Source of the DNA: Chrysemys picta bellii
Lineage: Eukaryota
Direction of reading: 5' to 3'
DNA length: 64,000 nucleotides
Assembly: GCF_011386835.1 (NCBI RefSeq)
Contig: NC_088804.1
Location: forward strand, 37,634,001 to 37,698,000
Shown here piece by piece: positions 16,108 to 17,094 of this stretch. The position numbers and the translations under genes were made by a program. The notes under the pieces are model-generated. The model saw only the letters and a list, made by a program, of their open reading frames with translations, made no database searches and was not told the origin of the DNA. Positions within the stretch are counted from its first letter, which is position 1. Each line of letters opens with the position of its first letter.

Positions 16108-16240
16108 GAAGGCTCTGCAGCTCAGTTGGGCTGGAGCCAGCGGAGGAGATGGATGCCTCTGCCCTGCTGCGGCACCAGGGAGCTGAACCTGGCTTGGCCA
16201 CACCCTGCCCCTGGAGGAGACAGACTCAGACAAGGAGGTT

Positions 16241-17094
16241 TTTTTTTTTTCAGGGACAGGAACTATGTTTATTTAATGTGACACTGACTTACACTGGTCA
16301 ATTGATTTGTACACACACCAGGAACACTCAGGCAGAAACCCCCGCTCCTCCCCCCCACCCCCGGCTGGCTGGGCCGACAGGAGGGAGCCGAATTCACACA
16401 CAGATGATTATTTCTTCCATGGGGCCAGCGGGCGGCGGATCAGCAGGGATGGTTCTATACACCTGGACTCCCGCTCCCGACGCGGCGAAGCGACGCCCCC
16501 GATCAGGAAATAGAAACATTAAATAAATAAACATCAAAACATCAAAACAAATAAACATTAAAACAGTCGCGTCCGCAGGGGGCCAGGCCGGAATGGGCAG
16601 GGGCTCAGTCCCCCATTTTTACTTTAGATGTCTGCAGGATGGCGACTATGACCCTGAAGAGCCCAATGGCGCTGCCGAAGATCTCCACGATCAGGATCTT
16701 GACAAAGAGGCTGGCGTTCTGGGCGTCGGCCAGCACAGCCCCACTGCCCACAATACCCACGCACACCCTGCAGAACAGGTTGGAGAGGCCCACGGTCAGA
16801 CCAGCCCCAAACATGGAGAAACTTGCGTGGTAGTTCTTGGCACCGATGGTCTCTGGGGTGGTGCCGCTGAAAGGCTCAGCCATGTTGCTGATGACGGTCG
16901 CCATGATGATCCCGTAGATGGCCACGGCCTCACAGAAGATGATGCTGACCAGGTTCTTTGTTTTAATCCTGGGGGCCTTCACTCCCCCGCCGATGATGCT
17001 GGAGCCAGTGATGTAGATCCCCCAGGTTGCGCCCACCACGGACAGCGAGATGGCCAGGCCGATGCCCAGGTTGGACCACATGAAGGGGGAGGTT
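16241..17094 (-). pseudogene. ATP6V0B: Processed retrocopy of V-ATPase 21-kDa proteolipid subunit c'' (5'-truncated, ORF uninterrupted)
   Basis: Intronless frame [21 protein letters not shown]...[10 protein letters not shown]...[10 protein letters not shown] (stop 16605-16607); about 350-nt 3' UTR; AATAAA at 16268-16273; poly(A) 16239-16250; TSD ggaggtt (16234-16240 / 17088-17094). Confidence 0.95.
16605..17081 (-). CDS. ATP6V0B: Potential 158-aa ORF in the retrocopy starting at the internal Met (human M48 equivalent); expression unproven
   Basis: First in-frame ATG at 17081-17079, no stops or frameshifts to TGA 16605; weak Kozak context; the tracked 184-aa ORF starts at a TTG in LTR sequence with an in-frame TAG two codons upstream. 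Confidence 0.3.

Follow-up and report, generated by a model that had tools for sequence, protein, structure and literature searches.

[quoted passage not shown] The question raised by this locus is whether the frame belongs to a working gene or to a decaying by-product of reverse transcription, and, in the latter case, when and by which machinery it was made. The locus is a 5′-truncated, intron-free, reverse-transcribed copy of the housekeeping proton-pump gene ATP6V0B. It is very probably an ordinary processed pseudogene, made by target-primed reverse transcription (TPRT) in an ancestor of the deirochelyine turtles and drifting ever since.

The copy encodes the V-ATPase c'' subunit (205 aa in the parent), with the first 43 codons absent. 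Read along the minus strand, the locus consists of host flank, the heptamer AACCTCC, the coding frame, the stop codon, a 3′UTR with an AATAAA signal, a further 17 nt, 12 A residues, CCTCC and again host flank. The 5′ heptamer (17088-17094) reads GGAGGTT on the plus strand, and its last six bases in the orientation of the retrocopy also encode T44-S45 of the parent. The intronless coding fragment (16608-17093, minus strand) comprises residues 44-205 of 205 and contains two stretches of the ATP-synt_C domain (PF00137, 3.6e-26). Within it begins an open frame of 158 codons (P0121; 16605-17081, minus strand), which extends from Met48 to the parental stop codon (16605-16607); exactly this protein is present in a database record. 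The coding part is followed by 354 nt of parental 3′UTR (16251-16604), some of which is read by a gene model of Trachemys (P0071), and by the polyadenylation signal (16268-16273; TTTATT on the plus strand), placed exactly 17 nt upstream of the tail. The poly(A) tail (16241-16250) is 10 nt long, or 12 nt if positions 16239-16240 are counted as tail and not as part of the target-site duplication (TSD), and the plus strand accordingly shows a run of 12 T at 16239-16250. The second heptamer occupies positions 16234-16240. A sequence-only reading of the locus had described an ATP6V0B retrocopy with the hallmarks of TPRT, namely 5′ truncation, lack of introns, AATAAA located 17 nt before a poly(A) of 10-12 nt, a flanking repeat of 7 bp and microhomology at the 5′ end, and each of these elements was confirmed.

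The absence of introns was examined by a local tblastn search of the whole window with the ATP6V0B parent of Gopherus evgoodei (P0001, 205 aa). This yielded a single match, in which residues 44-205 correspond to positions 17093-16608 of the minus strand, with 156 of the 162 residues identical, no gap and one frame, so the copy is intronless across 162 codons. No other pieces of ATP6V0B were detected in the 64-kb window by this search. Twin priming was considered and rejected, as the same search revealed no inverted 5′ piece of the gene in the window. That the parental gene does possess introns is indirectly supported by parental models that appear to be mis-spliced: the Chrysemys model P0057 deviates at residues ~118-134 and that of Platysternon (P0042) after ~197, as would be expected at exon borders, and the window copy continues without interruption through both regions. 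In a protein search, the window frame retrieved the turtle ATP6V0B parent at 96% identity, together with three shorter emydid proteins named c''-like. Proteins of the same designation were also noticed in the cetaceans Physeter, Globicephala, Kogia and Eschrichtius (80-85% identity); they are probably retrocopies that arose independently from the same parent gene, which is highly expressed.

The flanking heptamer deserves separate consideration, since its short length and its overlap with coding sequence permit two interpretations. On the plus strand GGAGGTT is present at 16234-16240 and at 17088-17094, i.e. exactly at both junctions, the former copy (AACCTCC, 16240-16234) being composed of the last two A residues of the tail and CCTCC of the host flank. 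The probability of a fortuitous repeat was estimated by keeping the 5′ junction fixed and drawing 40,000 random 3′ flanks from the window, with a slack of ±6 nt allowed at the 5′ junction and up to 3 A residues borrowed from the tail. A repeat of at least 7 nt arose by chance with P = 0.0025, or 0.005 when every position of the GC-rich host block was used in place of random window flanks. The heptamer is on these statistics (P 0.0025-0.005) an integration product and a putative TSD, as the sequence-only reading had proposed.

Of the seven bases of the heptamer, the six reading ACCTCC might just as well derive from parental cDNA, for they encode T44-S45. It could be argued on this basis that the heptamer is not a TSD at all, but that the 5′ AACCTCC represents parental codons 43-45 (GAA ACC TCC) and that the insertion was blunt or endonuclease-independent; the codon preceding ACC TCC in the parent specifies Glu and could end in A. 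However, the window has GCA, not GAA, ahead of ACC, and the host flank beyond the tail would have to begin with CCTCC by coincidence, a 5-mer with a frequency of about 0.001 per position. Moreover, the overlap observed is exactly the one predicted by microhomology-assisted joining at the 5′ end, because the target overhang would anneal to the cDNA at the truncation point. A blunt insertion is therefore improbable in our judgement. The microhomology with the ACC TCC codons, which had been pointed out from the sequence, is right at the protein level, with the codons for T44 and S45 lying inside the 5′ heptamer. Taking the heptamer as a TSD and following the layout of the plus strand, the pre-insertion site would have been GGAGGTT/GCTGGG, with the putative first-strand nick (slash) at GGTT/GC. 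Such a context is unlike the TTTT/AA of L1, as had also been remarked, and only the two T residues 5′ of the nick fit that pattern.

The retrocopy resides within a GC-rich block of unclassified repetitive DNA (15980-18153), which received the insertion and is not part of it. The termini of this block are direct repeats of 55 nt (15980-16034 and 18100-18153) that are 91% identical, and internal tandem units of ~90 nt are present at 17641-17865. In addition, the block has a (CT)n run near 17516-17537 and, on the minus strand, stretches that resemble tRNAs; Rfam and ARAGORN searches of 15500-18700 returned nothing real, and these stretches were not called. Apart from the 55-nt terminal repeat, the host flanks on the two sides share no extended similarity. 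Neither the block nor the retrocopy has a second copy in the 64 kb, hence no paralogous empty site is available there. The block may be an old composite SINE, an element that bears a minisatellite, or a tandem repeat with a unit of 1.26 kb, of which about 1.04 units would be present.

The position of the retrocopy between the direct repeats that bound this 2.17-kb block brings to mind another origin, in which an LTR-type or other mobile element captured a gene fragment, by template switching in a virus-like particle or by hitch-hiking, and then carried it elsewhere. Microsimilarity at the 5′ junction is a feature of LTR-mediated retrocopies (PMC5131818), and movement of such an element could explain the second copy that is present on the same chromosome (see below). 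Nevertheless, the insert has its own poly(A) and is flanked by a 7-bp duplication of host sequence, which means insertion into pre-existing DNA. With a tail of its own and 7 bp of the block duplicated, the retrocopy was inserted into the block and was not co-packaged with it. Furthermore, LTRs would be far longer than the terminal repeats (55 nt, 91% identity), reading of the termini showed neither TG..CA ends nor a primer-binding site or polypurine tract, and the 64 kb hold no other copy of the block. A gene model that includes the retrocopy (P0134) has its first exon 3.3 kb outside the block, and a duplication comprising this exon would necessarily have been segmental. In the LTR-mediated chimeras described by Tan et al. 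2016 (PMC5131818), the retrocopy takes the place of internal sequence of the element, typically with neither tail nor TSD, a description that the locus does not fit. It resembles LTR-mediated retrocopies in lying within a repeat that has direct repeats at its termini and in showing short similarity at a junction, but it differs from them in its poly(A) tail and host duplication, and no features of an LTR retrotransposon were recognized. Capture by an element is, in our estimation, extremely improbable, and integration of a reverse-transcribed mRNA into an already existing repeat is the reading retained below.

Several other repetitive structures were observed in the window. About 600 nt from the host block there is an open frame of 175 aa (14850-15377, minus strand) with a GIY-YIG endonuclease domain (Pfam, 1.5e-06), accompanied by inverted repeats (13437-13562 and 14577-14702); it probably represents the 3′ portion of a Penelope-like retroelement. 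A near-perfect palindrome at 62791-62994, with arms of 102 nt that are 98% complementary and without a spacer, consists of two copies, arranged head to head, of a SINE-like repeat that is abundant in turtles; further copies of this repeat were found at 7553-7761, 9404-9520, 13465-13581, 14564-14666, 31528-31630, 52670-52780 and 55774-55848. The only 500-nt bin of the window that passes the thresholds for a CpG island (26501-27000; GC 0.56, observed/expected 0.82) overlaps a pair of 91-nt inverted repeats (26635-26725 and 26873-26963).

The retrocopy is not confined to the window. The window frame (P0121) and XP_065423818.1 (P0127), likewise of C. picta bellii, are different sequences that are both located on a contig of 45,452,054 bp; one Chrysemys chromosome carries two copies of the retrocopy. 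Five proteins of the retrocopy type were compared, i.e. P0121, P0127, an older Chrysemys record (P0002/P0134), and those of Malaclemys (P0028) and Trachemys (P0071). All five are derived at residue 66, which is Thr in each of them except that of Malaclemys, where it is Asn. The replacement G190R is common to the copies of Chrysemys and Malaclemys; the Trachemys model leaves the frame before residue 190 and cannot be scored there. By contrast with these changes, the ATP6V0B parents of Chrysemys (P0057), Terrapene, Chelonoidis and Gopherus all retain A66 and G190. Only the Chrysemys copies have G134S, and only those of Trachemys and Malaclemys have V81L, a distribution that mirrors the species tree. 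In a maximum-likelihood protein tree the five retrocopies are placed on one side of a branch with support of 85/88, which is modest, only a handful of sites being variable. The contigs that carry the retrocopy measure 43.7-45.5 Mb in the three emydid genera, while the parent is located on contigs of about 112-114 Mb in two tortoises.

The simplest reading of this distribution is that a single retroposition took place before Chrysemys split from the other deirochelyines, and that a duplication at the DNA level followed in Chrysemys. The loci of the three genera appear to be orthologous, as judged from shared substitutions and chromosome size. Later replacements of their own number 2-3 in the Chrysemys copies and 7 in Malaclemys. 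Three distinct sequences of the retrocopy were noted in Chrysemys (P0121, P0127 and P0002), and P0002, from the old assembly, is ancestral-like at all five sites at which the two copies of the new assembly differ; this record could represent a consensus collapsed from the copies, a different allele or a third copy.

In RefSeq, the corresponding entries are designated V-type proton ATPase 21 kDa proteolipid subunit c''-like, i.e. XP_065423818.1 and XP_005292343.1 (Chrysemys), XP_053904964.1 (Malaclemys terrapin) and XP_034644682.1 (Trachemys scripta). They share with the window copy the derived residue 66, G190R wherever it can be scored, the start at Met48 and contigs of 43.7-45.5 Mb, and on this protein-level evidence the entries of the three genera and the window copy form one retrocopy lineage. 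The entries differ in being presented as protein-coding genes and in having each its own later replacements, and the Trachemys model is spliced around a defect.

The sequence-only reading had called the retrocopy young, an estimate contradicted by its distribution, given that residue 66 is derived in three genera and G190R is present in Chrysemys and Malaclemys. In the dates of Spinks et al. 2016, as cited in PMC5815335, crown Emydidae are 41.8 Ma old, crown Deirochelyinae 31.1 Ma, and the split of Chrysemys took place 24.5 Ma ago; the figure taken from Fritz et al. 2012 for this split is about 22.5 Ma. The retrocopy is at least about 24 million years old. Two replacements are shared on the stem and each later lineage has 3-8, and from these small counts the insertion may roughly be placed at about 25-45 Ma ago.

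How a copy of such age came to look fresh is best considered for its CpG dinucleotides. The ratio of observed to expected CpG is 0.75 in the 3′UTR (19 CpG in 354 nt), 0.54 in the coding sequence, 0.30-0.37 in the host flanks and 0.27 window-wide, and the earlier remark that many CpGs are still intact in the 3′UTR was thus borne out. When CpG decay is scaled to the turtle pace, well over half of the CpGs are estimated to survive 30 My. The genome of the painted turtle changes about one third as fast as that of humans (PMC4054807), and it is this slow clock that accounts for the crispness of the hallmarks. A tail of 10-12 nt and an exact 7-bp repeat are equally compatible with an age of ~30 My. 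It had further been suggested that some retroelement was recently mobilizing mRNAs in this lineage, but copies derived from the same event are present in Chrysemys, Trachemys and Malaclemys, and the intact CpGs and clean tail fit a slowly evolving genome. The slow turtle clock can keep poly(A) tails, TSDs and CpGs fresh-looking for tens of millions of years, and hallmarks that look young are no proof of recent activity in the painted turtle genome.

An old insertion with an open frame could in principle have been retained by selection. In this alternative, the frame beginning at Met48 would encode a c'' proteolipid without its first transmembrane helix, transcribed via an exon about 4.3 kb upstream and selected in deirochelyines. 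The frame is indeed open in four of the five sequences (the window copy, the second Chrysemys copy, the older Chrysemys record and Malaclemys), the loci are labelled by RefSeq as protein-coding c''-like genes, and the annotation of the parental gene includes, in many species, isoforms of 158 aa that begin at this same Met. In addition, model P0134 (UniRef A0A8C3PD27) joins a non-homologous exon to the locus. This exon, located outside the retrocopy at 21444-21485 of the minus strand, consists of 14 codons that are 100% identical to the N-terminus of the model; it is spliced in the model from 21485-21444, 4.3 kb upstream, to an acceptor at about 17130 (minus strand), about 35 nt before the retrocopy. 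The predicted junction might be a faint hint of a chimeric transcript, although in the window this exon has GC in place of GT at its donor site.

The pattern of replacements speaks against a selected product. Compared with the parent, the window copy has six (A66T, I109T, G134S, G152R, A163V and G190R), every one a single transition from a parental codon one step away, and three of them (G152R, A163V and G190R) are changes of CpG to TpG or CpA in the inferred parent. Such a set, all transitions and half of them at inferred CpGs, carries a mutational signature and no selective pattern, and the replacements look neutral as far as sequence comparison can tell. G152R and G190R introduce Arg at positions where every aligned parental protein has Gly. 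The retrocopies have accumulated replacements much faster than the parent, their terminal branches measuring 0.011-0.041 changes per site versus 0-0.006 for the turtle parents; the retrocopy branches are comparable to those that separate the turtle parents from the parents of alligator or marmot.

The window and Trachemys copies differ at 9 of 133 residues, and the Trachemys model passes from window position 16683 directly to 16350, beyond which it translates the 3′UTR in a foreign frame. Since it has to skip this segment, the Trachemys copy is evidently broken. Stop-creating changes make up 2% of the possible single substitutions in the 474-nt frame, and the probability that no stop appears after 10-20 substitutions is about 0.7-0.8. 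An open frame is thus likely by chance at the divergence of the copy (P about 0.7-0.9) and provides no evidence of selection, and a protein-level test gave no indication of purifying selection on it. Constraint on the retrocopies is relaxed, and a working retrogene is in our opinion very improbable, even more so than a blunt insertion. The c''-like protein-coding annotations in the three genera require correction: the evidence points to a decaying processed pseudogene, with a later duplicate in Chrysemys.

The history of this pseudogene can tentatively be reconstructed as follows. A LINE that uses poly(A) would have reverse-transcribed a spliced and polyadenylated ATP6V0B mRNA by TPRT, at a staggered break in a chromosome of an ancestor of the deirochelyine emydid turtles. 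The first-strand nick would have been made at GGTT/GC within an older GC-rich repeat, the two terminal T residues priming on the poly(A) tail. Synthesis of cDNA presumably ended, or the cDNA was joined, at codon 44, a point at which the mRNA and the target overhang agree over 6-7 bases, and repair would have left the 7-bp duplication. The product, lacking a promoter and the first 43 codons, would have landed on a chromosome other than that of its parent, to be passed on to Chrysemys, Trachemys and Malaclemys and, in Chrysemys, to be duplicated again at the DNA level. The order of these steps, like the identity of the LINE and the date of roughly 25-45 Ma, is inferred.

As regards the LINE family, turtle genomes are dominated by CR1 (PMC5381603), and CR1 and RTE were named by Shaffer et al. 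as the main turtle LINEs (PMC4054807). Supplement S2 of a survey of 244 VGP genomes (RCPedia-based; bioRxiv 10.64898/2026.06.26.734816) gives the repeat content of emydids as 8.8-9.2% CR1, 0.15-0.17% L1 and 0.23-0.25% L1-Tx1, from which it follows that poly(A)-using LINEs are present there at low abundance. In the same survey Malaclemys terrapin has 350 retrocopies and Emys orbicularis 384, and retrocopies are consequently not unheard of in CR1-dominated emydid genomes. The GGTT/GC nick and the 7-bp TSD would suggest that the mRNA was mobilized by something other than canonical L1, i.e. by a CR1-, RTE- or Tx1-type element with relaxed recognition of the 3′ end. We regard this as unlikely, though less so than any of the alternatives discussed above; a single atypical nick site cannot separate L1 acting at an imperfect T-tract from another LINE family. 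Thanks to its clean junctions, the locus is a usable data point for a genome-wide survey of retrocopy nick sites, and if the ~350-380 emydid retrocopies shared its junction signature, turtles would reveal the LINE that makes retrocopies in CR1-dominated amniotes. The presence or absence of the retrocopy could likewise be scored as a marker in deirochelyine phylogenetics.

Among known systems, the closest parallel is offered by the processed pseudogenes made by L1 in mammals. The turtle copy is like them in being intronless and 5′-truncated, in having its own poly(A) site and tail, a short putative TSD and 5′ microhomology, in its probable landing on another chromosome and in its neutral decay. 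It differs in the putative nick, which reads GGTT/GC and not TTTT/AA, and in the TSD of only 7 bp; the genomic setting is also different from that of mammalian L1 systems, the survey supplement putting CR1 at about 9% of emydid genomes, L1 at only about 0.15% and Tx1 at about 0.23%. Our literature search found no mention of ATP6V0B together with retrocopies, and turtles are not mentioned by Boissinot & Sookdeo 2016. The text and supplement text of the VGP survey do not name ATP6V0B or this locus, and Chrysemys is outside its data set. In other respects the copy agrees well with the turtle retrocopies catalogued there, which number in the hundreds per genome, with 52.6% conserved between species and 23.1% retaining an open frame (bioRxiv 10.64898/2026.06.26.734816). 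The locus thus adds one case to a known kind, the processed pseudogenes, as one of a few hundred in emydids.
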